The notes under the pieces were generated by a model. The model saw only the letters and a list, made by a program, of their open reading frames with translations. It had not been told where the DNA came from and did no database searches. A stretch of 64,000 nt of DNA. Origin: Dicyema japonicum. Its lineage: Eukaryota; Animalia; Dicyemida. The first letter of the stretch is position 1. Every line of letters begins with the position of its first letter. A program made the translations under genes and the position numbers. The stretch covers positions 1 to 64,000 of the forward strand of contig RDEW01000084.1 in assembly GCA_011109175.1 (NCBI GenBank), read 5' to 3'. Shown in pieces: positions 16,200 to 57,084 of this stretch.

Positions 16200-17000
16200 C
16201 AGTCAAGGCAGCCTCTATATGACCATTTGGGCAGGGCTTCGGCTCATATCTCCTGTTCGTCTGGAGATATGAGATGAAAATTTGATGGTCGATGATTTTG
16301 AAACAAAGACAAAGCCTCACTTGCATAGAGCAACGTCGGCTGGACAAACTGTTTGTAGATCATCTGATGGGATCCAGCGTCACTTCTGAGAGCCTTTGTA
16401 ACGACTTTTAATATCATCATTCTCTTCAGTGCGGCCGTTACCCGGTTATCCACATGCTTTGCGAAGAAGAGTCCCTGATCGAGTGTTACTCCAAATATAT
16501 TTGGTGTGTAATTGATGGGGAAGCTTCAAGACGGAGTTTTTTGAGCCGAGAAGTTAAATTGTTAAGCGTGCTCTTGGCCATCGTGGTAGCAGTTTGGTAC
16601 TTTTTGTCCTTTGCAGCGATAATGATATCGTCCGCGTATGATGGTAGAAGACAAAATGTCATTAATGTACAGATTGAAAAGGGTTAGCGATAGTGGAAAT
16701 CCTTTAGGACTCCATTTGGTAGGAGACGGAATTTTGACTTAATGTTATTGCAAATCACTTGTCCACGTCTCCCACTTAAGAAGTTGGCAATATACAGTTT
16801 TATATTTGGGTGGATGCACGTATCGTAAATTTTCTCAGTAAGGAGTTTTCTTAAGACTGTGTCGAAAGCCTTTGTTATATCAACAGAGACCAAGACTGTT
16901 CGTTGGTACGGTTTAGTGGAATTGAATCCCTCCGCAATAAACTGGCACAGGGACGTAATTTTGCTGTGGAGTGTTTAGCCCGGAATCCATGTTGGAAAGG
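16200..17000 (-). mobile_element. Jockey/I-group-like LINE RT fragment
   Basis: MVSVDITKAFDTV...NFLSGRRGQV...LPNGV, then YADD and IYKQFVQPTLLYAS. Confidence 0.85.
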
Positions 17001-18131: not shown

Positions 18132-18346
18132 AATTATTCCAAAGACCAAGGATAACCAAACTAACTAAATTCTTGATCCAGACTCGTTCCAGCGTTCCAG
18201 AACAGTCTCCATGTAACGACATTATCCCTGGGGAAAAAATAGTGATCCTCTTGATGCAGGCCAGGCATTGGGCGTCTCCTCAGTAAAGGTTGATCCAATG
18301 ACGCCATCGAAGGGAGACATATATACATACCAGCCACATAGCACCA
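18132..18346 (-). mobile_element. Family C element (leader + HDV-like motif + LINE-type tail), copy 1
   Basis: Collinear with 26191-26450, 31650-31912 and 31942-32147. Ends in ttagttagtttgg...ggtctttggaataa. Confidence 0.8.
18242..18308 (-). ncRNA. Candidate HDV-like ribozyme fold, copy 1
   Basis: GGCGUC AUU GGAUCA ACC UUUACUGA GGA GACGCC CA AUGC CUGGCCU GCAU CAAGA GGAUCA follows the order P1-P2-P3-L3-P3'-P1'-P4-J4/2-P2'. Confidence 0.5.
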
Positions 18347-18939
18347 TATATATACATACTAGTCACAAAGTCCATTTATTACAAGATTATTGTTTTTTAA
18401 TTATTTTTGGACATAAATTAATTATTTCAATTATTTTTTATAATTTAATAAATTGTCAATTTTTATTAATATCTGTTTAAAACCACTCACACATACATTG
18501 GGAATCGTCTTTACTTTTTATGCTGGTTCTGAATAAACTTGTAAGACATGGAAGGTGTCTATTGCAATGAGAATACACTTAATTGACTGTCAACTTCTTT
18601 CTCGGTGTATCTGGGGTTAATAATATTCATCTTACAGAGCAGGACTATAGCAGTCTTATTAATGACAACATCTCTAATTGTTAGAACTATAACATTCGGA
18701 TTTACTGAATTTATAGCTGATTTCACAATGTATTGTCCCGACAATTACATTTAATATTATTTTACAGTTAATGTTACTTTTATCAATAATTGAATAGAAT
18801 TTTTTAATGCAGTTCAATAATATATTCGTTCCTTATTTTTGCCTCTATGGTTTTGAAAATTGAGAAAAAAACAAACCTGTCATCAAATGAAGACTACTAA
18901 TGCCAAACAAAACGATGCTGGTCTAGGTCTAGTTCAGTT

Positions 18940-19590
18940 TGAGCATAAAAGCTTGTCCAAGTCTCGTTGTTTATTAGCGTTCTTCAGAAATCCACACTTA
19001 ATCACGTCCAGACATTTGGAGCCATGCATGCCACTGGTTCAGCGTCCGACCCGCTAATGTAGCGTAGGATCTGGCGTGTGAGACCACTAGAAGCATATGT
19101 CGAAGATAGAAAAGCTGGAAGGGGGAGTTCTACTGGTGAGCTTATTCCGATTCCTCCGTAGAGAAGCGGTAGGTTGTATTGGATCCAGTAATTTTTATCA
19201 AAAAAAATGTTGAGTGTTTCTTCAATGGTAGTTCTCAGCTTCTCGTCGATGGCTCTTAAGAAGTTCATGTCCGTGAAACATGAGGCTGTCCGTAGAAGAA
19301 AAAAGAGTAAGGTGAAAATTCCTGAGGAAAAATAAAGACGTGGAGTCCAGAGTTTTTAATGCATTTTTCTCTTCCAGAAGAGTCGACATATTACTGGCAT
19401 CTAGAGGAGATTCGAGAAAAATCGGGTTTTCGAGTCTGGTGACTGAGACGTCCTGGAGATAGGATGAAATCGTAGTCAATGCATGGTTAAAGTCGTCTTC
19501 TCCGAAAGAAACGTTATGATTCATATTTTGACGGATTCGGTTCCAACCCAAGTTCTTCAAGAGGAGAGATGGCGGACTCAACCTCTGCCA
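18940..19590 (-). mobile_element. CRE-like non-LTR retrotransposon remnant
   Basis: LRAIDEKLRTTIEETLNI...LPLLYGGIGISSPVELPLPAFLSS is homologous to the 23705-26165 copy. Confidence 0.8.
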
Positions 19591-20297
19591 CCATAATTTC
19601 CTAATTCCCCCCGATGGTCATTTTCCTAAACCATAAGTTCATTGGGGTTCTGATCACTAAAGTTGTATAATCGATGCCCAAGGCAAAAAGTAGGAGGAGA
19701 ATGTGGTCGTCTTGTTGATTCCAGTCTTAAATTCGATTATATGTTGTCTTAAGATCAGCGTGAATGGGGTACCATATGAGAGTTTCACCATCCTGATAAT
19801 TTCCGAGATCCTGGAGATGCTAGGTTCTATCGTTAACAGTACAATAGTTGGTTCAAACGGAGTAGGCATTCATCAGTGTTAGATAAGTCAAGATAGGTCC
19901 AGAGGAAGCTCCTGTGATTCCCAAGGCATGGGGGAATGACCAAATTTTCTTTTTAGCTTATAGCACCAAGGGTGTCCAAAATTTGACGGTAGCATTGGAT
20001 TCCGAGTTTCCTCTTGTTTGCTTTGCTGCAGATTAAACAGGGAAGAACTTACGGGAAGTATGGTTTATTATGTCCACTTTCGGTTCACTGTCGTTCGTTC
20101 TGTTAGTAAAATCTACCATTTTTATTCCGAAACTCAAAAGCGGCCCACTAGACCAACTCAACACATTCTTTTGTGTATATATTAAATTCAAATTATTTAA
20201 ATTTATAATATCACGATTCTCATAGATAGTAGCTAACATAAGCAAACATTTCGGAGAAGATAGGTAGATTTTTCCCAAACGTCTCTGGCTCACAGAT

Positions 20298-20622
20298 TAA
20301 TAATAATAATAAAGCCTTTTCACGAGAGCCATAGTATTTATAGCTCCGCATAGGCAGGAGACACACTTTATTTAAGTAAAGAGCAGTTAATTTTAACTAA
20401 TCATAGAACCAAAGAATGATCTTCACTTCTTTTTTTCTTTTTCTTGTGTGAGTGTCCTTTCTAGACAATCCAGTTCCGCAGTGAGTATCCACTGATGACG
20501 GCGTCACTCGTCAAACTCTTTCTGCATCGTAGATGCGTGGAACCTTCCACCAGGTGAACAGCAGCGAGATTCGAACCCGTAGCCTAAGCCACTTAAGCCC
20601 GACACCTAACCACTATGCCCCC
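20298..20622 (-). mobile_element. SINE-A full-length copy
   Basis: Reverse-strand match to the 13813 and 55890 copies, (TAT)n tail, imperfect 10-bp TSD cacagattaa/cactgattaa. Confidence 0.9.
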
Positions 20623-21249
20623 ACTGATTAAATATAATTTTTTTAATTTTTGAGCGTTCATGTGATTTTTAAACAAGCCATACGAGCTAAAATTAATTCT
20701 CATTTGTGATCTCGCAATTCAATGAATTTCAAATATTCATTGCGTTTGATTTAAAAGAGCCAGTACTTTCGGGAAGTAATGTTTGATATATTTATATCAA
20801 TGGTCGTTTTAATATCAAATAACCGCCGAATTAGTAACAAAGAAGAAAGATTACGAAGTAAGTTTATTTATATTTTTAATTAGAAAAAAGATGCGAAATA
20901 ATAGTTCATACACTAGAAAACGAAAATTCAACATGGGAAGATGTATACAAATATTTGCTAACAGAGTAAATCAACTCCACTCACAATTAGTCAATTTGTG
21001 TCTTAATGAATATAATAATGTAACTTATTATGCAACATTGGTGCCACATGTCGAACATAATCGAGCAAATCTAAATTCTTACTGCGAAGTTACATCACTT
21101 CGTTTAATCAATACATTACTTATAAAAAACCTTAACGTAACGACTAATAAGTTTAAGAAGTACGTGGACTGTGTTTTAGGTTACTAACAAACTAATTGTA
21201 CTGTTCTGATTAACGTCGTTATCAATAAATTTTGTGTCTGTCTGTTATC

Positions 21250-22770
21250 AATATATAACCAGATATTTTTCTCACTGAATTCAAAAATGGAGTATAGAAG
21301 AAAAAACTCATAGACCACGGAAACACTAAATTAACTAAAATTTAATTGATCCATTTTATAGAAGGATCCACAAAACTGAAGAAATAGTTTGCAAAATAAC
21401 AGAGCTTACCAGAATGAGAGAAAACCAAAGATATGATGATGAAACGAAGGATATGCTTTGCCAATGTGGATATCCAAAATCAGAGAAGATTGAATTCGGG
21501 AGAATCGGTGCTTGTATTCATGATAACATAAGATTGAGAAGAAACGACTTCTAACCAATGAATCTAGGAAGGAATTCAGAAATCATTATTGGTGTTTTGA
21601 ACTCAATCGAAGATATTTTATCGTGAATTCAACGAGGAGCAAAATACTCTGAATTTTTGTTTAACGAAAGCTAGTGTCTTTTATTTTGGGAAAAATATCC
21701 GAAAAAAAAGAGGGGTTACTACCGAGTGGCTCTGTCACCGCAAATCTTTGACTTGTAATGGACCTTCTTAGCAGGATACTAAATGCGAGATATCCCAAAT
21801 TGTTATTGACAACCATGATTTAAGATCCCCTAGTTATGCAACAAACCACCTGTGTTTATGGACGACAAAAAAATGTTCTCTCAAAAAGAAAACGCAACGA
21901 TTATGATGAAGGAGGTTAATTCTTTCTTTGAAGCACTAGAGTTAAAGAAATGTCGAAAATCTGCTACTAATGTGCTCACACTGGAACCTAAGCTAATTTG
22001 CATGACAGAATGGATGGATATAGATACTTTGATGTGTTGGAGGATAGAAAAGGCAACGTGTTGAAGCCAATATTTGACGGGGTTAAAAAGAAGATTGACA
22101 GTCTGGAAAATACAAGACTGAACTTGGGTAGCATGTTAAAAGCCATAAACAAACATGCCTTATCCTTATAAAATTACAATATTGGACTCACAGATTTGGA
22201 ACCTTCAGAATTTGAGCTGATCTACCAAAACATAAGGAACAAGAAAAGACTCTATCTGCCAAGAGATAAGCTTGCAAGAAGATTGGTATCCATTATTCAT
22301 AAGATAAACGGATGCTTTTACAATTCTTCCAAGACTTGGAGAAGTCAAATTATTGTTTGAAGAAAGCAGGGATTCTAATGCGTCATAAAATCAAGGAAAA
22401 CAACATTTAGCCACAATTGGTAGAAATTCCTCAATCTAAGATATAAAGAACCCCGCTGTTTTGCATCTGACTTATCAAAGCTCCAGGAGATATTGTTAAT
22501 CGAAGCACAGACGATGTATTGATATGTGGGACAGGAAAATCTTGAAATACAGAATTGATGTGATCCAAACAATGCTACAAGAAGCTTGGAAAGTTAACGC
22601 CGAAAAAAATTGAAGAGTGCAGCTTCTAAGGTTAACTGGAAAAACCCTTGTTTCTGGATAACGTACAGGAGGCTAACGAATGGGAGTTTAAAAGCGAAAA
22701 CATTGAGCTAGCCGATCAAAATGGAAGGAAAATCCCATTGGAAAAGTTCCTTCGGTATTCCGAAATCAAC
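21250..22770 (+). mobile_element. R4/Dong-like non-LTR retrotransposon, degenerate
   Basis: FMDDKKMF...LELKKCRKSATN and downstream YKITILDSQIWK-like segments; many stops and frameshifts. Confidence 0.65.
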
Positions 22771-22849
22771 TAGAGAATATACAGGGTGTTGATCCTATTA
22801 GTGTTATAAATGAAAATTTTTAGAGGAGTTGCCTAATTTCATGGATTAC

Positions 22850-23560
22850 TCTCTGGAAGATCTGGGTAGTTTGACAGAAAAGTCTCAATGGCAGAAGTTA
22901 GAACAGCAATTCGTGAATGCAAAAACAAGGCCCCAGGATTTGATGGCATTCCTATGATTATGTTCAAAGAAAGTTTTGATGAACTATTGCCTGTTCTAAG
23001 AGAGATGTATGACTCTAGTTTCAGGCTCGGACACGTGCCTCCTTTATGGAAACGATCTATTGTTAAGATGATCCTCAAGCCAGGAAAAGCAAGGAAGGAT
23101 CCCCTCAGTTATAGGCCGATAAGTCTTATATGTTCTACATCAAAGATTATGGAACGTATTGTATTTAAAAGACTGAATCCGTATATAGAAGGGAGCAACT
23201 TTCTGCGACCTAATCAATTTGAAGGACATCGAAGGGCGAAGGAAAAAGGCTTTGCAAACACTGAACTGTACTAAGAGACTGAAGCTAGACGTTGATTCCA
23301 TGCTCTTCATCTACCGGAATGTGATTCTTCCCAGACTGATCTACGGAAGCGAGGGATGGTTCCACACCCCCTCGAGAGAAAGGATTCTCGCCCGACTGGA
23401 GAAAACACGGCGGGCGGCGATAAAACTAACCCTCGGTAAGAAATTACATGAAGTTCTGACGGAGGAAGAGAAGAAACTTGTCAGGCCGATCAAGGAAGAC
23501 ATCCGAATCAGGACGTCAAAGTAAAAAAGACATAGAATGGATTATCAGAAAAAAGGGTAC
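22850..23560 (+). mobile_element. Jockey/I-group-like LINE RT (second family) with the RT core deleted
   Basis: KAPGFDGIP...WKRSIVKMILKPGK...SYRPISLICSTSKIMERIV...NQF is joined directly to the thumb region IYRNVILPRLIYGSEGW. Confidence 0.85.
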
Positions 23561-23704
23561 CGTGATGAAGAGTCTAGGCCTAACAGGCAGACTTATTAGT
23601 ACCTAATTCGTAACATGTTGTTTTTGATTTGATTTAACGTTCATGTGAATATTAAACAAGTCATACGCGCTAAAATTAATTCGCACAAGAGATCTCGCAA
23701 TTAG

Positions 23705-26165
23705 ATGAAAAAGAATCCACAACAGTTCAGTCCCATACGAGCGATTTTCCTCAGTGAACGGGTAGATAGTTAACCCATCCGGTCTTTTCCCGTCTCCGCG
23801 GTCCAATCCCACGGGCTCCAATACTGCCGGGAAGCCTGCAACTTTAAGAGGACACATGACAATGTTGTTCATAGCAGCATGGCGGAGTGCTCTGCCCGAC
23901 TCCTTTTTCACGAAAGCAGATGCAGCCCTTTGGTATCGACGATCCTCCACAGACATTGGTGTTCGACACAAACATCAACTCCCAGCCGCCAATCCGAATA
24001 CAGTCATCGTCCAAAGGGTTCCCAGGGAGAATACTGGAGTGCATCTAGCCGCGCTTCCCTTTCATAGTTGGCGGTGGACACGAGGCATGCAAGACGATGC
24101 TGGTTGGCCTCAGACTTTAGCATGTCGAAGATATTCTTGGAGTAGATATCATCCCAGTCTCGTTGCCTCGAAGGATCGTTCGGCATATCCAAACCAGTTT
24201 CACACCATTCGCGACGAGCTTCATCGAAGACTCTTTCCCAAGAAAGTCCGGTTGTAAAACGTAGGATATCTTGGACCAAAAGGCTTCCACTTGAGAGCGA
24301 TGACACATATGCTGGAAAGGCGATCTCCAGCGCCGACCTGAGACCCGTTCCTCCGAGGCGTGTAGGAAGCTTGCATTGGTTCCAACTCGGCACATCAAAG
24401 TGGATGTTTAGAAGCAATTCAGCTGATTTTCTCAATGTCCTATCCAGTGACAGGAGGATGTCACGATGTTTGAAGCAGGGAGAACATCGGAGAGCATATA
24501 GGAGTTTGGGCAAGCCGATGCTATTCTTCAAAAGGAAGAACGCTGTATGACCATCGAGTAAGGAAAGTTTATCCGTGACTCTGGAGAGTTCATCCTCTTT
24601 TGTTTGTAGATGGCTCCGCAGTTCCTTTTCGTCAAGTGGGCACCCAAGAAAGTATGTCCGCTCCCTGGGTACGACAGTAATTCCAGGTAATACCGAGTTG
24701 AAAGACTCGACCACGTTGATGAAATCACTCTCCGAGTATGTGATATTTATTAGCTCCGATTTCTTTATGTTTATCTCAAGTCCGAGGTTTCGTAGTGCTG
24801 GCACGGCATGTGACAGAACGTCGTGTACTTTTCTCCACGGCCCTCCAATTGTGGCGTCATCAAGATACCAAAGGTTAAGTTGTGTGTTTATAGAGCGGAC
24901 AATTTCATCGATGGCCAGAGCGAAGAGTAGTGGACCAAGTGGGTCCCTTGTTGAACTCCGGTCTCCGAACAGATAATCTTGTCCCCGAAAACCAGTGAAG
25001 AATTGTTCCGTAAGCGAGGAAGACAAGTGGAATAAGTTCCGGGGCTCGTTTTGCTTGTAGTTTCGAAAATTTGATCCCTCCTCAATGAATTGAAGGCATT
25101 GCAGATGTCCAGCTTGACCCCAATGTGTGGGTTTTGTTCGTCATTCTGTCCAAAAAAACCTCGCAGCATGCACTGCCGCCTCGCATCCGTTCCTTACACC
25201 AACCCCAGTTGGAGGGGGGAAAATTCTTCAGATATTCTCGGACAGACAATGCTGCATGCATTTTCGCTGTCAGTCTTCTGAAATAGTTGCCGACTGCGAT
25301 GGGGCGGACCCTTCAGGTTTTTTGAAGGCCAATAGATGTGCACTGAAAAGAAGCTCCCTTGCGTGGGGAGGAATAACTCCGTTCAAAATACGCATAACCA
25401 GTTTTGTAATTGATTTAACAAGGTTGCAGCCAGCTTCTGCAGTAGCCTCCGCCGTAAGATCCTTGATGTGACCCGGCCGCGAGCCATCGATGCCTCCACT
25501 GCTACTCGCCGCAAAGACGAAATGCCGCGTCGCACTTCGCCTTCGGTGACGGTCATCCTTGACAAATTTCCCGGAAGCACGAATGGGCGGTAATCTGCCG
25601 GAGCATGGATGTTTTGTCTAGGTAATTCAAGCACCTCAGGCGTCGCAACCATGACAGTATCGTCGCTGGCAACGACGCGCAACGCCGCTCGGAATAGTTT
25701 ACGATTTACTCTCTCCAAGTTTTCCGGGCCATTCAAAAAAAACCGAAGGATTGAAAACAGGATGATTTCTGACTTCTGTCTGGTGAAGAATGCGCATAGA
25801 AAACCTGGATGTTCTTCTTCATTTTTGAGGAAAAAAAGTTCCAAGTGTCGTAGTTTTTCCTCCTGTGTTCCGTTGATCTCCTTTTGAGTCGATAAAAGGA
25901 ATTCCAAGGCCATCGGGCAAAACTGAGGAGTTTTAGCCAGGTCTCCTGGTCGTCGGACGTGAGAGCATCGTCAATTGCAGAGGCCAGGCATGTAGCCGCG
26001 GGGATCCGGACGGGTCTTGGGATCCTGATTGGGATCTTCCTAGCTTTTCTTAGATCCGACAAGAAGAGGAATTGGTTGTCCATATCATTGAAGTCTAGAG
26101 GCTCATTCGGTTCGACGTTTTCTTTCTTGGTTAAATTTTCTTTATTCAGTAAATTTGCTACTTTC
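23705..26165 (-). mobile_element. CRE-like non-LTR retrotransposon (RT + REL endonuclease), truncated at both ends, few lesions
   Basis: GSRPGHIKDL, QFGVGVRxGCEAAVHA, KLDICNAF, GVQQGxPLGP, WYLDDAT, a C-x-H zinc finger region, and LEPVGLDRGDGKRPDG (REL). Confidence 0.9.
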
Positions 26166-26190
26166 CTGCAACAAAATCAACATGAAATAA

Positions 26191-26450
26191 AATTATTCCA
26201 CGGATAAATCCAAACTAATTAATTCCTGACGTGTTCCAGCATAACCCCTACCCAAGAACAGTGATACAGAGGGCGTTGTCCGATTCCAGAACTTGTCGCC
26301 AGGGAATTAAATTGTCTCCCGTGGGAAGAATAGTTGGATACTTTTGAATGCCGGCCAGGCATTAGGCATCTCTTGAGTGAGGTGGATCCAATGGCGCTAT
26401 CAGCGGAAAGTTGAAGAAATTCTCAACCAATTAACCACATGGCGCCACAT
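26191..26450 (-). mobile_element. Family C element, copy 2
   Basis: Leader gtggcgccatgtggtta, core uuggaucc acc ucacuca aga gaugcc ua augcc uggcc ggcau ucaaaa guauccaa, and a LINE-type tail. Confidence 0.8.
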
Positions 26451-26574
26451 CGCACGCCTTAAATATACTTAATTTATGGTATTATTTTTAGTTTAAAAGT
26501 AAATACAAAATTAACAATTTCGTAAAATTGATTTATTTTTTATTTATCAATTTTTTGAAATTTTATCTAAAATA

Positions 26575-27110
26575 TTCCATGCGGCATTACACAGGCTGAA
26601 AAACCTATGGCTAAAACGGAAAGGGAATAACATAAAACAAAGGATATTGTTATACGACACCTTTATCAAACCAATCCTCCTATACAACTCTGGGACCTGA
26701 GGCACCTCAAAAGAGGATTAGGAGAGGCTAGACTCGTTTCACAGGAATCATCTAAGAAACATAACTGGAATGTCCTCGCCATCCAAGATCTCGCGGAAAG
26801 ACTGTACAATATGTGACTGCACGCCAATAAGTCTCGAGATCATTAACTCTGGTTGGAGACTTTTTGGACACGTGCTGAGGTTAGACTTACACCCCCCAGA
26901 ATATAACCATGGAAGACTCCTCCCATGTAAAACGCTCTCGTGGAGGACCGAGAACAACCCTCCCTGTCGTTTTACAAAACGATCTGAAAGCCGTAAAGAA
27001 AACATTTGCATTCTGGCGACGACCTGGACACACTGAGGGATCTGGCTAGGAACAGAAAAGCCTGGAATAAGTTAACTCTTAAAGATATAAGTACTCAAAT
27101 GAAACGGAGA
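26575..27110 (+). mobile_element. RTE-like LINE 3' part
   Basis: LYDTFIKPILLYNSGT*G...RLDSFHRNHLR...WRLFGHVLRL...RTTLPVVLQNDL. Confidence 0.85.
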
Positions 27111-27298
27111 GTACAGAAAAGGCCTCATATTTTTGCTTAGAAACGATAATTTAATTCTGATTTTATTTAGACTTTTCTTGAAAGGAAAGACAAAAAAGTT
27201 GAAATCTGGGTTGAAGTGGAACTAACTACACTAGTTGGTTAGAGGTGCGAAGGTGGGAGTCGTTAAGCTCCTGTGCGGCATAGATACTGTGGCTATTT

Positions 27299-27775
27299 TT
27301 GTCAAAGGAAGAGTTATTAAACGCGGGAGAATCCCACTTGTTACTAGGATTCAGGAAAGAGGACGACGCTTCAGCTTTCGAAGCTGAGGTCAATACAAAG
27401 GTACCTTTTGGGCCCGGGGCACATAACCTGTCACGGGTGATTCCTAAGGCTTCGGATTCAATAGTGCTAGTCTTCGGAGTCCCTCTGGACTTTGTAGATG
27501 ATAATGTAGTCGAAGACATCAAGAAGGACTCCAAAAGCTGGGGGAGGACTCCGGACCATGAAAGTCTTGCTTCGCTCTGGAGCAAAGGCAGAGAGGATCT
27601 GAATTGGGGAGGGGGGTCCAATTTGCGGAAAGCCTGCCAATCAAAAGTCTGGTCTCTCAAGTGCTTGAACTGTGGCGAGGAAACACAGGGCGAGTCATTT
27701 AAGATGCCCTGTATCAAAAGGCTACGGAGAAGGTACTACAGGGAGAAAACAGGCACCATCATCTGGAATGGCTAG
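27299..27775 (+). mobile_element. LINE ORF1 (gag-like) fragment
   Basis: VFGVPLDFVDDNVVEDI and a degenerate zinc knuckle KCLNCG; GC-rich island among LINE debris. Confidence 0.5.
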
Positions 27776-28204
27776 TGATGTAAGCGCTATCCATCGTATG
27801 GTAAGTGGATACCCAAACGCGCTTAGGGAAATTGCGTTGTGCTACAGAAAGGAAAATGCGCCGAAGGTATTTTTCAAATTTATGTCTAGGTTGAATTTTT
27901 TGATGGAAGATCGGTCTAATGTCAAGACTTAAAAAATAATTGTTTTTTATTATTTTAAATAAATTATTTGTTAAATCTAGCAATTGTATCTTGTTACCAT
28001 GAAAACACGTAAAAAACAGGTTGCCCATACGCATCAAGCCATTCATGTGACATAACAATAATAAATATTCCATGTTGTGATACCGCTCATGCAGAAACAA
28101 CTTAATCTCTTTAATCTACTATAAAATAATGAAGAATCTATTAATTTTTTACAAAAAGGGGGTTTTCCCGGTAAAAAAATATCGTAATCGTAATTTGTTT
28201 AATT

Positions 28205-28400
28205 ACCGATGGGTGGTGATGGAATATCGTAGAAATAGACGAATGTATATATTCCAAACGAAATAATAATTGTGAACGATTATTCACCCAACAATGGTTT
28301 TTTGCGGAAATTAAAGAATGTTTCTTCATGGAAATTCAAGATCACACTTTGAAAACACTTACAAAAGCGATAGTCTAGAATGTTACTGTTGGCTTAACAC
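28205..28400 (+). mobile_element. Merlin (IS1595/ISXO2-like) transposase fragment
   Basis: Frameshifted GGDGI.VEIDECIYSKRNNNCERLFTQQWFFAEIKECFFMEIQDHTLKTL resembles the Merlin VEIDES..KRKYNRGR...QWVFG...KECF motif. Confidence 0.7.
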
Positions 28401-28678
28401 TTGTATCTATTGGCGATAATTTGACCAACTATTGATCCGAGTACTGGCCCATACACAGCATAAAGAAAGTTTCTAACATCATTAAACTTTTGCAGATTGA
28501 GAGGTACTGCTAATTGCGAAACTATAAGGAGATGGGAACCACATGACACATTCTAAACAGCCATTTTTACCCTAACTCAACCTGTAAACCGAATCATGAA
28601 TTCAGCGCAATATTAATGGGAATACGGAATCTTTGGTCCATTTTCCTTCTAACCATATGGGAATTTACATACGAGGAC

Positions 28679-29293
28679 TTATCCCGTAAGCAAGCCTTTG
28701 AGCAAAATTTCGCGTTTTCTCAAATTTATGAGGATAGAGTCTATCTTTTTCGAATCGTACCATCCTTCTAAACTGCATAACATTGCAGGTAGTATCGCAG
28801 TGTTGAAGATATAAACAAAAGTCTCCGGCTCGAGCTTTAATTTTCTAACGCAGTAAAGAGCGTTAGTAGCTTTTTTCTTTCGTATTTTAGCATGTTCCAT
28901 AAAATTACCTCCCTCGTCAATTAGGAGGCCAAGGTATTTCATAGTTTTTTTCCGAGGTATGTCTTTTAACAAGCTTTTTAAGTTAGCCATTCTCTTGCTT
29001 CCAGTTATCCTCAGCATACCAGACATCTCACGTGGTGCCGAAAGGAAGTTTTCATTGCACCACTTTTGAATCTGATCCATGTATGTTTTCAAACGTTTCT
29101 CAGATACCAAAGGGTTTAAAGAAACATCATAAATTATGACGTCATCAGCGTATATCAAAATTTCTGTACGTGGGTTTTCTGGAGAAGGCAATTCACTCAA
29201 TTCAATGTTATAAATGACGGGAGGCCAAACAATTTCCAGGTTAGGATTTTCCTTAAGACAGAGTCGAAGGCCATTTGTAAATTGATCGAGCAA
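28679..29293 (-). mobile_element. Jockey/I-group-like LINE RT 3' half (same family as 22850)
   Basis: ILIYADDVII, MKYLGLLID, IFNTAILPAMLCSLEGW. Confidence 0.85.
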
Positions 29294-29887
29294 ACGACTG
29301 TTTTGAGATGGAGAGGATTGTGATCACTCATTAGTTCTGTGGATCACTCGGATGAATTGATCAGAAAAGTAATCCATACAATTTGGTTAAATTGGATTAT
29401 AAAAGTTCTTATTCCGTATGTGCTTTTTACTATACAGCAATATAATCTGGTTTGTGAAAAAACAAGTTATAAAGTTTAATTAATACTATAATTTTCAGAA
29501 TTTATGTTTTTTAAGAAAAAATTAAGTTCGTTAAGAAAAGGAATGATCCAAGTTGCTAAGAAAAAAATGAAGAAAATTGTAAAAGAGAATGCTCTTAATT
29601 CTCCCTGAATAATCCGAAACTTTTTTCAAAAATGTGTTGTTCCGATAAAAAAAAAGATAATTCACAAATCTCGTATGGTGCTTTAATCCCTAAAAAAGTG
29701 CCAGAATCGTTAAGAAAGACCCTTGCTTTGATTTAAGAGATGAATCCATGATCCTTTATTCCACACAAAATTCAAAAATGAGTTTATTGATAGCAAGTTA
29801 GTTTGTCTGGAGAAAGGCCTTTATCTGAAACCTTTTCTCTTGATGAATTAAATCTATCAATTGGAGGATGTGGCCATTTTGAATTGA

Positions 29888-30108
29888 GCAGGGTGGCATA
29901 GTGGTTAGGTGTCGGGCTTAAGTGACTAAGGTTACGGGTTCGATTCTCGCTGCTGTTTACCTGGTGGAAAGTTCCACGCATCTACGATGCTAAAAGGTTT
30001 GACGAGTGACGCATCATCAGTGGATACTCACTGCCGAACTTGATTGTCTAGAAGGGACCCACACACAAAAAAAAGAAAAAAAGAAGTCAAGATCATTCCT
30101 TGGTTCTA
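29888..30108 (+). mobile_element. SINE-A copy lacking the 3' tail
   Basis: Matches the consensus from the head to gatcattccttggttcta, then diverges. Confidence 0.9.
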
Positions 30109-31254
30109 GATCATGAAAAAAGCAGTCTTTAATCTAATTACCAAAAAAAATTATGGAAGGTTAAGGCTGATGGCCCAAAGTTTGACTGTACCCACGTGTG
30201 CACAATACTTGGGTTTACCCTCATTCTAGTTGTTTTCTTGACTGTAATTAAGAACTCAGACCTTACATCCTCCTATTTGACGAGTTTACCAGATTGGAGT
30301 GTTGCAGTTAAGCATTTTAATATCATTAAAAATGTTTATCGATAATATTCGATCATCTGATATCCCTAAACACCCTCTTCCATATTCACGATTAACTTTT
30401 CAATACGTTCACCTGGTGGCATTTAACAGAATTTTTTTACTTGTGGTGTCAAGCAGAAATGCAATTCAAGTAGCACACCAAAGATCCTTTTATATTTGTT
30501 AAAAATGATGTCGATCTAGTTTAGCTTCAATGTGACTGTCTTCCTTCCCGATTTTTTTTTACGTAAAAAATGGACGTGGACGACCTTCTGCATTCACCAT
30601 GAGCCGGTTTTCCATAATCCATGATCCGGTGCAGGTTAATTTGTATTGTTTCTTTGATTATAAAAAATAAGAATGACTATGTTAATACGGGTCAATCAAG
30701 ATAGATGCAATAACTAAAGAAAAGACATATCGAATCTCACATCGATTGACCCTTTAGTCATACTTCAAACTTAAAACTGGTTTCATTGCTTTTGATTTTC
30801 TCTCTACTTTAATTAGTGAGTTTGATGGTTAATAAATATTGATGGTTCATCAATGGTGTTGCTATATGTTGAAATGTTAGTTTTTGTTAACAATATATCG
30901 CTGTCAGTGGATATCGCATGTCCTCAAATTCATAGTTTAATGTCACGTCATTTCGGTTACAATAAAAGTTACATTCTTGATCTCATTTTTTAAATTTATT
31001 GAGCCAATTGCGGACATTTACTCCAAGAGAGATGGAAGACCGTGATACCGGCAGAGCGCTTTCCAAGCCTACTAGTTCCAGAGCCTACGGTAATCTAGCC
31101 CCCTTAAAAGAGCGCTTCATGACCTAGTAATTGATGGCATTCCTAGAAAACCAGCAGCTGTTGTGTCAGGAGGTGAAGCCCTTTGCGGTCAACAACAGAT
31201 CCACATCGGTAGAGGTGAAACTGACACTATTAAAATAATATTAACTCTCCCCTT

Positions 31255-31490
31255 CCGCTAAGAGTAGTAATGTTTCCATTACTCATCTCAGCTTAGGCAG
31301 AACTCACACTTTATTTAAAAAATAAAGAACAGCTACCCTAATTAATCCAATCCATTTATCAAAGACATCGAAGTTGTTTTTTTCTTTTTTTAGCGTTTGT
31401 GTCCCTGAGACAATCCGGTTCCACATTAATGAATCACTGATGAAAGAATCAGTCTTCACTCTCAGAAGCATCGTAAATGTTGACTCCATT
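31255..31490 (-). mobile_element. Divergent SINE-A subfamily (A2) copy with a different 3' tail
   Basis: Body motifs acgatgc, catcagtg, ggaaccggattgtc, A-tract, ctgttcttta and aataaagtgtg.g.tctgccta are collinear. The tail is replaced by an AGTAATG-GAAA-CATTACT hairpin. Confidence 0.65.
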
Positions 31491-31649
31491 ATATTGTGCT
31501 ATCCATAAAAATATAAAAAATACGACAACCACTCCACCAGATTCAATGTTCAGCCCGTTGTCGTATAGCGAGTCTTAGTGAGCAAGACGGTCTTTTTTCC
31601 AAGATCGCTTGGTTCCATAATATCGAAAGTGATTAATGAGCGTCGGGGA

Positions 31650-31912
31650 ACCGAATGTCTGTTCCAAAGGATTACTCTGGTAGTCTCTCTTCACACAAGA
31701 TCAGTCATCCAAATGACTCGTCTGGAGAGATGGGTCGATTCCTGAACTAATCGCCAGGAACGAAATTTCTCCCATTAGAATAAATAATTGGATCTTTTTG
31801 AATTCCAGTTAGGCATTGCCCGTCTCCTGAGTAAGGTAGACCTAATGACGCCATCAGAGGTATGGAGGAGAAATTTTAAAACAATTAGCCACATATAAGC
31901 AAATGGCGCCAC
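31650..31912 (-). mobile_element. Family C element, copy 3
   Basis: Core 31788-31855 reads GGCGUC A UUAGGUCU ACC UUACUCA GGA GACGGG CA AUGCC UAACU GGAAU UCAAAA AGAUCCAA. The left boundary is approximate. Confidence 0.7.
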
Positions 31913-31941
31913 TTGGTTTGCAATAATAAAAATTAGATTTA

Positions 31942-32147
31942 AATTATTCCAAAGACCAAGGGTAGTTAAACTACTAAATATTTCATCATGACTCGTTTTA
32001 GCATTCCAGAACTTGTCTCCAGGGGAAGAATAGTTGGATCCTCTTGATGCTGGCAATGCATTTGGCGTCTCCTCAGTGAGGTGGATTAATGACGCCATCG
32101 GAAGAAAGGAAAATAATTTATGATCAAATAGCCACATAGCACCACAT
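31942..32147 (-). mobile_element. Family C element, copy 4
   Basis: Core 32034-32099 reads GGCGUC AUUA AUCC ACC UCACUGA GGA GACGCC AA AUGC AUUGCCA GCAU CAAGA GGAUCCAA; tail ggtctttggaataa. Confidence 0.8.
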
Positions 32148-32199: not shown

Positions 32200-32420
32200 G
32201 TCAGTTGAGGAAACCGGCTGCGTGGATTGCGAACGAGTTTTTTCGGAGTGTGGCCATTCCAATCTTTTGTCTCAGCCATAACTCTTCTCGTTGATCCCTA
32301 TTCTTTCTGGCAAGCATTCCTCAGAGTTCTCGCAAGAACTCAGCCGTCATTGGACCAACAGCTCCCGATGATTCGGCCGCAACAGGAGTAAATCATAGCG
32401 GTTTCCGAGGCAAGAATATT
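32200..32420 (-). mobile_element. CRE-like 3' end fragment
   Basis: Homologous to 49160-49380. Confidence 0.8.
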
Positions 32421-42821: not shown

Positions 42822-42905
42822 GATGGGGGACAATATGAGACAGCCATCCACTTGTCTAGGTGACGCCTAGTGCCAGGCCGGCACGAACAAATATCATTTG
42901 CTTTT
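42822..42905 (+). mobile_element. Diverged family C-like core
   Basis: ccatcc act tgtcta ggt gacgcc ta gtgcc aggcc ggcac gaa aligns to P2-P3-P1'-P4 of family C. The P1 5' strand is degenerate. Confidence 0.45.
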
Positions 42906-44518: not shown

Positions 44519-46449
44519 TGGTAATTCTTATTAATAATAAATTAATTTACTTGAATAAAATACATTCATATTAGCACGTTTATGTTAATCAGAAAATATC
44601 AAGTCGACGATGGTTGTTCAATTTAGTCAGAGACCCCTAACAACTCTTCAAACAATAAATGAATAATGTCCTTATCGGTATCGTGTAGGATCCCACAATA
44701 ATAACTTAAATGAATAAAAAAGTTTATATAATTATATTAATAACTATTAATATTTTAATATGGTCAACCATAATCAATAACCTTATTATAATAAACCTCA
44801 ACATTGACTCTTGTTGTCTTTCATCTTATTTGCTTTATATCTTTATTTTATTTTAAAACAAAGTAATATTTGCTTATAATATAATTTCTTCATTATTGAA
44901 AGTGCAAAATTAGTCAAACTTTTATCAAATAAATCTTTGATTCGTCACTTCATTCATCATGCTGCTTTTAATTATGAAGAAATCATGTGATGTACATTTT
45001 ATTTTGGTTCATGTTGAATTTTTTTATAATCGAATATATTATATTTTTGAAAACCAATTTTTGTATCAAAAATATAAATTTTTACATTTCTATATCGCTT
45101 TGATAAGCGTTTCCATTGTTGCAATCAGGAATATCTTGATGAAACATTCGTTAAATCTCTGAAACTTGTTGATGATTTGTTTAGTATTTTCTTCTTTTTT
45201 TGTCAAATTCACTTCTAAATCATAATTTTTATAGTGAGTATTTCTTGCCGGATAAAATATATTCATTTCATTGTTTATATACATCTCGATAAATATATGA
45301 ATGTTTTTTCGAGATCTACCTTTGTTCCTTAACACTTTCCATTTTGTCATTACTACACCAAACCGCTTTTATTGGCGTAAACATGTCTGAAAAGTGGGTA
45401 GTCAAAAAGTTAACAAGTACATTCTATTCCCTGAAATACATTTAATCATTTTCGGATTTCACAAAGTGTGTTCTTTATTATCTTAGTTATGTGGTTAATT
45501 TCCAAGTCTACATACCAGTGGTTTTCATTTCTTTTGTATCTCTAAAACACTTTTTTTTGCATTGAGCCTCTCATTATATATAATAATCCCTTCTATAGTT
45601 GGGATGTAACTTTGCCACAAAACTCTTCACAGCTATCTCTATATGTAGTGATGTGCCAAACTCTGTGAGGTATTCTTGATTTTTGGTCTTGCTGACAAGA
45701 AGGGGCATTTATCCCTCAGTGCTCGATATATTGGCCTTAATAACCTACAAGGTATTACTTTAAACTCTCCATTTTGGAATATTTCCCATTAAGTGTGTTA
45801 GTAATGGGGGCAAGATTGTAATCAGCAGAATGAATTATCTATTGTTCCTTTCTTGCTTATCATCTTTTTGCCAAGCAGATGTGCTAATAGATACTTCTCC
45901 TGTTCCTCTATTATTGGATCCTTTGGTGGTTATCGATTGTTTCATCTTTATTTTTCCAAGTGCTTCATTGCAATGACACCACATTTTTGTAGAAGATTTT
46001 TATGTTGAAATTTGCCTGAGTAACAAAAATTTGATTTATGAATAATTGAAATACAAAATTTAGTTGTTTTTTTTAATTACTATTTACCATTGAACTATCA
46101 CACCCTGTGTGAAAACTAGGTGGACCAGACGAAGTTAGCAAATAGTAACGGATTTTCCGATAGGTCCTCCAGACGCTGAGGGTATAGATAACAGAAGACC
46201 CCATGCAGTGGAGATTCCTGCTATGTCGACATTGCAGAATCAACTCGTATATGACGACGAAAACAAATAAAAAAGCATTATCTTAACATGTTTCCATTGA
46301 TGATATCACGTATTTGCTCAAAAAAACATTTTTTAGGTTAACCGCAAAAAATAAAAAATAGCATTTTTAATCCAAACTATTTTAGGAAGATATGAAGAGT
46401 AGTATTTTTATTAATTTAATTTTTGATTTAATATTAGAAGTGGTGTGGT

Positions 46450-47379: not shown

Positions 47380-49150
47380 ATACAAATGATCTGAGCTTAT
47401 CCGAACTAACAACAGACTCAATGGAGCCGCCTAGTTGGACGACTATGTCACAAAAATTCTTGTGCCACATTTTGGAAAACGCTAAGAAGGATTAATAGCC
47501 TCATCAATGAGGAGGACCGCGGAACTGAGGCCGTTACCCGCAACGCTTCGGAACCCGCACGCAAACTCGCAAACAAGATTATGAAGTACTACGTATCGAT
47601 CAGCCATAAATTTTTTCTCGTTCTACACTTGTTGAACGGCGCCGACCACAACAAGAACCATATTCCACATTCTTCACCCCCGATGATGTTGACAAGGCTA
47701 TTAAATTGCTACATCCCACTCGTGCTTGTGGTCCCGACGGGATTTGCACTGTTCACCTCAAACACTTTGGACTCAGGCACGGACCATACTATCAAGACTG
47801 TACAACGACTCTATCAACTACCATACGTTACCTAATATATGGAAAAGTCCCTGATTACGCAAATCCTAAAGCCCAGAAAACCAAAAGACTCTTCTTACCG
47901 CCCCGTCTCAATAACTTGTATTCTATCAAAACTACTGGAAAAGCTTGTATTAATGCGCATTTCTTCTGTTCTACATCTACCAGAGTTTCAACATGGTTTC
48001 AATGTAGACTGTTCTACAACGACTCATTTGGGTTCTATCTCCCAGTTTATTACTGACGGCTTCAACATGAGAACACACCTACAGACGGCCTTAGTATCCA
48101 TCGACAAACAGAAGGCCTCTGATTCTGTTCCGAGGAAACTCCTAACGCAAAAGATTTTTAATTCATGCATACACCCAAACATCAAGCTATGGCTGGAAAC
48201 GACACGGAAGGGTCCGGATTGACAAAACCACTTCAAAATCAAGATTACTCCCCAATGGAGTCCCGCAAGGCTCCCCTTTATCTCCTCTCCTTTTCAACCT
48301 ATTTCTACATGACCTACCTACTACCAATGACCAGGACACTATGTTTTTATCCTATGCGGACGTCCTAATTATCGCTGCAAGAAATAAATCTCCTTCCATG
48401 CTGTAGCAACTGTTCAGACATACCTAAACCGAATTTGGACTGGCTATCTGCAAATACGTTATGCGTATCAGCATCCAAGTCTCAGTTCACATTATTCACT
48501 ACGGACAGAAGGTTTAAAGGTGGGCTTGAGATATCCATCGGAAACACTCCCATCCCTTCTACGCGGACCAGAAGATCCTTGGTGTAGCTTTCGACTCTCT
48601 GTTGACGTTCTCGAGTCACGTGGAGGAGATGCTCGCCAAAGGTCTTCGGAAATGGAACATTATGAATGCGATGATAAAGAAGAGCCCTTTCTTCCCGGCC
48701 GACTGCATCAGCAAGGTCTATCAACAAGTAATCATACCGATAATTGAATATGCCTGCTCCGCCTAGAGGTTTGCGATTCCCCTTTCGAGAGTGGACCGTT
48801 TGAACTCCCTCAGGCGGAGAATTATGCACCGCACGGACATCCCCATTGGCGACCTCGTTTTTGATGAGGCAACGTTGAAAAATGGCCAGGGTTTCCTACG
48901 TTTCTGCAAGGAACTGGGAAACCCATTCAAGGAAAAGGTGGCCCATGCAGAGGAATTTCGGTTTGTTAATAGAAAGTGCACGCCGATCTAATTCCTTTGC
49001 AGAAGTAAGAGAAGATGCTTCAGAAGACCAAGAAGCGGTTAGATCATCAGAAGACCAATTGAAGAGAGTTCGGATGTTGCTGGAAGCTGGGATCACCTAA
49101 TTAGTTAGTTTTGGCCTATCTTTCCTGGTGGTCTTGGGGTTAAATAAATA
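47380..49150 (+). mobile_element. Jockey/I-group-like LINE-B, RT through 3' tail, frameshifted
   Basis: ACGPDGI, SYRPVSITCILSKLLEKL, FQHGF, GVPQGSPLSP, YADV, ILGVAFDSLLTF; ends LEAGIT* followed by the tail cctggtggtcttggggtttaaataaataaa. Confidence 0.9.
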
Positions 49151-53260: not shown

Positions 53261-53602
53261 GCAAAGAACTCTGAGAAATGTCACGATTGAGTTATCCTTT
53301 TACTAATACTGATATCCAGCCTTATCTTAGCAGCAAATGAGAATGGTTCGTGGTCCATCTTCTTATAATCACTTAAGACACTCATAGACAATATCACAGA
53401 TAAGTTTCTGTCCTCGGCTCGTGTTCATCGTATTCATAATGCAGAAGATTTTATGCCCTCTTCTGCCAAACGAATAAGCTTGAGAGAAAAGTCGATAAAA
53501 AACTTATAGCTGGAGGCCTCGAGACTGCTGGATAATTCTTATGAAAATAAGCAATTGTTTCACCATAACCTGATTTAATAGACTTCATATTGAAAATTAA
53601 CT

Positions 53603-53680
53603 TATTCCAAAAACCAACGGTAAAACCAAACTAACTAATTCCTTGATCCTGACGCCTTCCAGCAGAACCCTCACCCAAGT
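53603..53680 (-). mobile_element. Family C-type 3' tail only
   Basis: Reverse complement cttgggtgagggttctgctggaaggcgtcaggatcaaggaattagttagtttgg...ggtttttggaataa matches the tail of 26191-26260. Confidence 0.7.
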
Positions 53681-56699: not shown

Positions 56700-57002
56700 C
56701 TCCTCTTGGAATTATTGACCCCTTGCACCAAAAAAGATTTATTTTTTCAAGTCGTGCAATATTTTTTTAATAGATCTTGCACGTTTCTCATAACTAGGCG
56801 GTAATTCGGATTTTAAATCCAGTCCATATGCCAGTTTAATAGCATATCTCCTCGATCTATCGAGAAGCTCTACAAGAATACTTCTCTCATCACTTTCAAA
56901 CCATCCTTGGAAGCCATAAATCAAGAATAGGTCAATAAAAGCTGTATAAACATAGATAATAGTTTCCGGACTCAATTGAAAACTTAGAAGCAATTTCAAC
57001 AT
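56700..57002 (-). mobile_element. LINE RT thumb remnant (family of 22850 and 28679)
   Basis: LSPETIIYVYTAFI...LIYGFQGW...LDRSRRYAIKLAYG. Confidence 0.7.
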
Positions 57003-57084
57003 CGCTGTAGCTTTTTTTCTTGATGTAATTTATAAAGGAACCCTTCGAGTTCACACAAACACAAGATATTGCAACTGAAAGTCT

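Follow-up and report, generated by a model that had tools for sequence, protein, structure and literature searches.

A ribozyme-like double pseudoknot predicted within abundant short retroposons of Dicyema japonicum

The first 64,000 nucleotides of contig RDEW01000084.1 (assembly GCA_011109175.1; this whole stretch is referred to as the window) from the dicyemid Dicyema japonicum, a member of a group of octopus parasites, contain four copies of a short dispersed repeat, here named family C, each carrying a module that is predicted to fold in the helix order of hepatitis delta virus (HDV) ribozymes. HDV-like ribozymes are known from the extreme 5' end of long interspersed elements (LINEs) and of short elements derived from them, and there they free the element from read-through transcripts by cutting. 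In family C, and in a second, larger family of short interspersed elements (SINEs), family D, the module does not stand at the 5' end. The published genome of D. japonicum comprises 67.5 Mb in 377 scaffolds, with 49% repeats and very short introns, and repeats of the family C type were left unclassified there (PMC6736024). Our searches covered both the window and the assembly (67,542,437 bases in 377 pieces).

A preliminary description, made from the letters of the window alone, had claimed four copies of ~210-260 bp, all on the minus strand. Their positions and strand are borne out by an alignment, in which the copies can be followed over ~210-290 bp with a mean column identity of 67%, and by a covariance model of the module (R1), trained on 44 modules of which 40 came from other genomic copies and four from the window. 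In a search of the 64-kb window R1 returned four strong matches, all on the minus strand, the next match reaching only 12.8 bits. The four copies, and the module of the best preserved one, are located as follows.

18132..18353, minus strand: copy 1, with the module at 18238-18305 (R1 80.1 bits)
26191..26450, minus strand: copy 2, with the module at 26331-26398 (R1 70.0 bits)
31650..31925, minus strand: copy 3, with the module at 31785-31852 (R1 64.6 bits)
31942..32147, minus strand: copy 4, the best preserved, with the head at 32097-32147, the module at 32031-32096, and the body and A/T-rich tail at 31942-32030 (R1 80.4 bits)
32031..32096, minus strand: module of copy 4, 62-66 nt, in the order P1-P2-P3-L3-P3'-P1'-P4-J4/2-P2', with the predicted cut between 32097 and 32096

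Marginal R1 matches at 32343-32395, 42859-42900 and 45911-45980 were rejected, the first and the last of them proving on reading not to be related modules.

BLAST of copy 4 against the whole assembly gave 41 scored matches at 75-84% identity among 629 candidates, and a 25-nt core, GGATCCACCTTACTGAGGAGACGCC, was matched at 507 genomic sites with up to 3 mismatches allowed, compared with none for the reversed pattern; the family thus has at least 507 copies, a lower bound. A consensus of 249 bp was built from 80 of the 507 copies, taken with their flanks. Most of these 80 copies are 85-94% identical to the consensus, and family C is therefore old. The 5' ends of 49 of the 80 lie within consensus positions 2-12, while the others are truncated at scattered positions from 13 to 72; at the 3' side, 25 of the 80 copies run to the very last base of the consensus and 54 stop within its last 5 nt. 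Target-site duplications of 13-16 bp, and in one case of 33 bp, surround several copies, and in copies with duplications the element reaches 6-16 nt further upstream than the consensus start. Flanking repeats of at least 11 bp were found for 22% of the copies as opposed to 7% of mismatched flank pairs. From 5' to 3', the element consists of a head of 65-80 nt (GC-rich ..CGTGG.. repeats, then a pyrimidine-rich linker), a module of 62-65 nt and a body of ~110 nt with a fixed, A/T-rich 3' end (..TTTGGAATAATTTTAATTTAA). Short length, high copy number, duplications, 5' truncations, a constant 3' end and the lack of coding capacity are the traits by which SINEs and retroposons without long terminal repeats (non-LTR retroposons) are recognized, and family C, which shows them, is an abundant non-LTR retroposon of SINE type and of considerable age. 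It had been proposed as a non-autonomous family similar to SINEs or to SIDEs, the short internally deleted elements derived from LINEs. The first part, a dispersed non-autonomous retroelement, stands on the duplications, truncations and fixed 3' end. The module lies 65-80 nt inside the element, behind the conserved head, and not at the 5' end.

The heads gave no tRNA match with ARAGORN and no tRNA or other match with Rfam, and a head with A and B boxes for RNA polymerase III, which we had considered, was dropped. A run of four T between head and module makes read-through by this polymerase doubtful. An apparent E-box in the head (CCACGTGG) was likewise dropped, as it can be explained by CpG decay of CCGCGTGG. 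In four genomic loci (L036 and L042, L081 and L090) copies of family C lack exactly the 5' strand of P1 (..GATGGC(G).. deleted), with the remaining module intact; L036 and L042, whose downstream flanks are the same, represent a segmental duplicate.

The module of the family C consensus reads GAU / GGCGUC A UUGGAUCC A CC(U) UACUG (A)GG A GACGCC CA AUGCC UGGCC GGCAU CAAGA GGAUCCAA. A brute-force search in HDV order (P1 of 6-7, P2 of 5-8, P3 of 2-3 and P4 of 4-6 bp, with bounded loops) found in it a perfect parse of 22 bp, made up of a P1 of 6, a P2 of 8, a P3 of 3 and a P4 of 5 bp, and found none in the reverse complement of the consensus. Any parse at all was present in only 4 of 3000 dinucleotide-preserving shuffles, a single one of which attained 21 bp, while the other 2996 had none. 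The HDV/CPEB3 helix order proposed in the preliminary description is thus borne out, all the more as it recurs in family D. P3 in family C can be drawn either as CC/GG with an A.A mismatch, which that description had listed as a deviation and which is indeed found, or as CCU/AGG around a loop of 5 nt. For P1.1 no more than one Watson-Crick pair is available, a possible U-A beside A x C. The family C consensus also contains CAUUGG/CCAAUG (module positions 6-11 and 34-39; in the window e.g. 32086-32091 and about 32058-32063, minus strand), a perfect alternative helix of 6 bp that competes with P1, P2 and P4 and might trap the RNA of family C in a misfolded state.

The window copies themselves are decayed insertions, relics from which no activity is expected. 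None of them can be parsed in HDV order without mismatch, one mismatch being needed for copy 4, two for copy 1 and three each for copies 2 and 3. In copy 4 the 5' strand of P2 is short by one G (UU-AAUCC), and copy 1 has one additional U in the loop L3 and a damaged 3' strand of P2 (GGAUCAC). Copy 3 belongs to a subfamily with L3 UUACUCA and UCAAAA in the joining segment J4/2; two of its P1 pairs are broken by a 3' strand that reads GACGGG, and there is one mismatch in P4. Copy 2, of the same subfamily, has a longer body, L3 UCACUCA, an A in place of G1, and one mismatch each in P1, P2 and P3, that of P3 being C x A. Reading the modules confirmed what had been noted about the core, namely that the C in J4/2 equivalent to the catalytic C75 is present in all four copies, that CC/GG of P3 is kept in three of them (the exception being copy 2), and that every copy opens L3 with a U, whereas the G25-like position is occupied by G only in copies 1 and 4.

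Copies 3 and 4 (31650-32147, minus strand) stand head-to-tail with ~20 nt between them. Tandem or near-tandem pairs were also seen elsewhere, at L003:1319-1701, where a 3'-truncated copy is joined directly to the head of the next copy, and as same-strand pattern matches 107-343 bp apart on contigs C224, C328 and C157. Such pairs suggest that the element inserts into A/T-rich tails of its own kind, or that the template is switched.

It might be argued that the pseudoknot parse is incidental, and that the core acts through its sequence and does not need the double-pseudoknot fold, for instance as an internal promoter or as a motif in a SINE "central domain" to which a protein binds on DNA or RNA. 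Several observations agree with this explanation. No covariation was detected within family C, where 90.1% of cells are paired compared with 90.5% after column shuffling, and where double changes number 1 against 2.0 expected. This lack of signal among the copies matches the neutral decay of dead copies. For the same reason the change in P2 of copy 3 that had been called compensatory (UUAGGUCU/AGAUCCAA) is real but has no evidential weight, being one such cell against a mean of 2.0 in the column shuffles. In addition, the nested minimum-energy fold is no better than that of shuffles (z = -0.04), a value that is uninformative for a pseudoknot, and GGAUCC is a palindrome, two copies of which pair automatically. 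Conservation is also not confined to the module, as a block upstream of it (..TTGGTCAAAA.. with a pyrimidine tract) is common to sister elements as well. However, an incidental parse is hard to reconcile with the scarcity of parses among the shuffles and with the comparison between families, and we consider it very unlikely.

Modules related to that of family C were first seen as low-scoring R1 matches in the flanks of fetched loci and were then followed by pattern searches. Family D, the larger of the two families with at least 830 copies, has 920, 832 and 508 genomic matches to three partly overlapping patterns. Its consensus reads GGCGUC AU GUGAUCC ACC UGUCU(C)A GGU G(A/G)CGCC CA GUGCC AGGCC GGCA(U/C) GAAAAA GGAUCAU and can be parsed in HDV order in the same way as that of family C, with which it also has the head in common. 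The paired positions at which the two families (including D-a and D-b within family D) were compared are listed below.

P2 pair 10-64: G-C in family C, U-A in family D
P2 pair 9-65: U-A in family C, G.U in family D
P3 outer position: A.A in family C, A-U in family D (ACC/GGU)
P4 closing pair: A-U in family C, G.U in D-a and G-C in D-b
P1 pair 5-31: U-A in family C (U.G in subfamily C-b), U-A in D-a and U.G in D-b

In P2, which is GUGAUCC/GGAUCAU in family D as opposed to UUGGAUCC/GGAUCCAA in family C, two adjacent pairs are changed on both sides with pairing kept, and the differences in P3 and P4 keep or improve pairing. The alternative helix CAUUGG/CCAAUG, by contrast, is broken in family D, which makes P2 the conserved helix of the two. 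These comparisons argue against an incidental parse, and the predicted double pseudoknot is supported by the comparison of the families, though by few independent events.

Decayed or low-copy sister elements with the same module and other bodies were found at L021:2783-2840 (plus strand), L026:434-492 (minus strand), L129:2417-2474 (minus strand) and L138:3005-3062 (plus strand). In these sister elements the module is directly preceded by a pyrimidine-rich tract, which in L021/L026 and L138 comes with UAG, and all share a ..CTTGGTC.AAAGAAT..-like block still further upstream, so that the block conserved between families reaches past the would-be cleavage site.

A helix order far beyond chance, together with the occurrence of HDV-like ribozymes in non-autonomous retroposons, including the internal second signature of SIDER2 (PMC4035085), raises the question of whether the module works as a self-cleaving ribozyme in SINE transcripts, if only in those of the family C master copies, where it would trim read-through transcripts or free the head as in L1Tc/NARTc, the R2 SIDEs and the second signature of SIDER2. 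We regard this as unlikely. If cut RNA were the common template, copies would begin at the predicted cut, consensus position 66, but none of the 80 copies does, which by the rule of three limits cut RNAs to less than ~4% of inserted templates. The RNA that is retrotransposed is evidently uncut, and cutting would moreover take off the head that all families conserve.

The core gives a divided picture. A G1.U37 wobble at the cleavage site is a hallmark of HDV-like ribozymes, whereas the partner of G1 is C, not U, in both families C and D (GGCGUC/GACGCC or GGCGCC). The module is at most a putative member of the ribozyme family, and it lacks this defining feature. In the main subfamily of family C, L3 is the 7-nt UUACUGA, with the U1 and G6 that would be expected of an active ribozyme, as in copies 1 and 4 of the window. 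However, the base at position 6 differs among subfamilies (G, C, A or U), and family D (UGUCUA, UGUCUCA) has no G there, while loss of the L3 G abolishes cleavage in R2 ribozymes (PMC3774820). The C of J4/2 likewise speaks for activity in family C, being present in 29 of 29 and 71 of 76 other copies besides those of the window, but D-a has GAAAAA after GGCAU and hence no C at the start of J4/2, and in D-b a C is found there only with the closing pair of P4 open, in which case C-G-A-A follows as in HDV. A C75U ribozyme is inactive (PMC13635239), and the loss of both the L3 G and the J4/2 C in large, successful sister families and subfamilies speaks against an active ribozyme.

The UA/UA form of P1.1, which the preliminary description had listed as a deviation, is not disqualifying, since P1.1 of a very fast HDV ribozyme of Caenorhabditis briggsae consists of U:A and C:U (PMC13635239); the weak P1.1 of family C (U:A and a mismatch) is therefore compatible with fast cleavage. 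On the other side, the A.A in P3 of family C and the lack of any Rfam HDV-like match are unfavourable to an active ribozyme. The Rfam models for HDV, CPEB3 and drz had no match in the window at gathering score and, at E up to 10, none on copies 3 and 4 or on three near-consensus copies, and RF00094 had no match across the whole assembly, so that the Rfam scoring suggested in the preliminary description came out negative. These models are sequence-specific and blind to pseudoknots, and their null result carries little weight.

A search of the assembly for reverse transcriptases found at least 150 places. One full LINE examined (L141) showed no module (best 8.6 bits) and no similarity to the SINE tail, and no LINE 5' end bearing the module was found in the window or in ~300 kb of fetched loci. 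LINE fragments in the window and in these loci adjoin SINEs by insertion only. A reading frame of 31 amino acids behind a sister module matched its own duplicate only. Apart from family C, the window holds the following fragments of retroposons.

1872-2498, 16708-16893, 28715-29221 and 56763-57026, minus strand: LINE reverse-transcriptase fragments (several different genes)
22852-23497, 29518-29871 and 47410-48400, plus strand: LINE reverse-transcriptase fragments (several different genes)
53602..53651, minus strand: 5'-truncated fragment of a related SINE family, body and tail only, without a module

The LINE fragments of the window are 23-55% identical to the open reading frame of a LINE from contig C157, and none of them has a module or a SINE tail. 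At 26580-27179 and 29780-30179, the summed depth of contigs from sequencing runs exceeds that in adjacent bins by a factor of hundreds, which points to extremely abundant repeats other than family C. The runs, all of a single 2019 sample, are four sets of contigs, none of them on record as RNA, and were taken as genomic DNA on account of their short repeat-deep pieces, scattered skips of 49-181 nt and lack of pile-ups of beginnings or ends.

Known systems resemble family C in different respects. Among the closest are the trypanosomatid L1Tc/ingi elements with their Pr77 signature and NARTc, RIME and SIDER1/2, where an HDV-type double pseudoknot is likewise found both in LINEs and in abundant short non-autonomous retroposons, many degenerate copies are inactive, and SIDER2 has a second, internal signature (PMC4035085, PMC3185411). 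However, the pseudoknot of L1Tc/ingi-type elements is at nucleotide +1 and is also an internal promoter, and their copies begin at the cleavage site. The family C module, in contrast, lies behind a conserved head, with none of the 80 copies starting at the site, and the likeness drawn here is one of fold. In the R2 ribozyme and its SIDEs, similarly, a ribozyme fold has been passed on to short internally deleted parasites of a LINE (PMC3414825, PMC3774820). In R2 and the SIDEs the ribozyme marks the 5' terminus, retains the L3 G as well as the catalytic C and is proven to cleave, whereas family C has a first pair G-C, an internal position and a putative LINE parent. With the HDV, CPEB3 and drz ribozymes (RF00094, RF00622), family C shares the helix order, a C that opens J4/2 and, in its main subfamily, a 7-nt L3 of the form U..G, and it differs from them in a P1 of 6 bp that starts from G-C rather than G.U, in the A.A of P3, in a P1.1 with at most one Watson-Crick pair and in the absence of model matches at E up to 10.

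A further parallel lies in the conserved central domains of SINE superfamilies (CORE, V, Deu, Ceph, Nin-DC and Meta), blocks of ~60 nt in the middle of the element that are conserved for unknown reasons. The likeness is by description only, in that a conserved block of ~60 nt is found within otherwise different SINE families. To our knowledge, none of these domains has been described as an HDV-type pseudoknot.

On balance, we lean towards the view that the module is a ribozyme-derived structural domain of a SINE superfamily rather than a self-cleaver that forms 5' ends. Selection on the source genes would maintain the nested double pseudoknot, at least in the two large SINE families C and D, and the RNA that is reverse-transcribed would be the uncut one. 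The signature of the catalytic core is incomplete and drifts between families while the helices are kept, which is the pattern expected of a fold retained for its shape. This shape is probably kept because either the retrotransposition machinery or the stability of the RNA needs it. It is possible, though we hold this with considerable doubt, that an HDV-type fold has been turned from a cutter of 5' ends into a non-cleaving internal central domain that is needed for the copying of thousands of dicyemid SINEs, for example as a handle for the protein of a partner LINE.

Several points weigh against the reading as a structural domain. The covariation comes down to a small number of independent events, in essence the contrast between families C and D. 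The C-G/U-A variation at P1 pair 3-33, which we had tried as covariation (C3-G33 to U3-A33) and rejected, is accounted for by decay at two CpG sites, the single and double changes among the listed copies being about as frequent as expected from independent decay. The core of the main subfamily of family C is fairly good, with U1 and G6 in L3, C-A-A-G-A in J4/2 and a possible U-A pair in P1.1, and D-b would have the C-G-A-A of HDV if its C is unpaired. Judged by its sequence, therefore, the consensus could cleave in vitro, perhaps slowly. Finally, a protein-binding role, with the module serving as a handle for the machinery of a partner LINE, is pure conjecture from analogy, the 5' RNA of R2 being bound by the R2 protein.

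An HDV-type knot would thus sit in the middle of at least two SINE families, whose copies in this parasite genome of 67 Mb, half of it repeats, number well over a thousand in all. If the consensus cleaves, the module would be an HDV-like ribozyme located inside a SINE, and if it does not, a ribozyme fold kept for its shape. Either outcome would come with a first description of dominant Dicyema repeats that the genome paper left unclassified. Should the reading as a non-cleaving central domain be true, it would explain in structural terms why at least one of the enigmatic core domains of SINEs is conserved.

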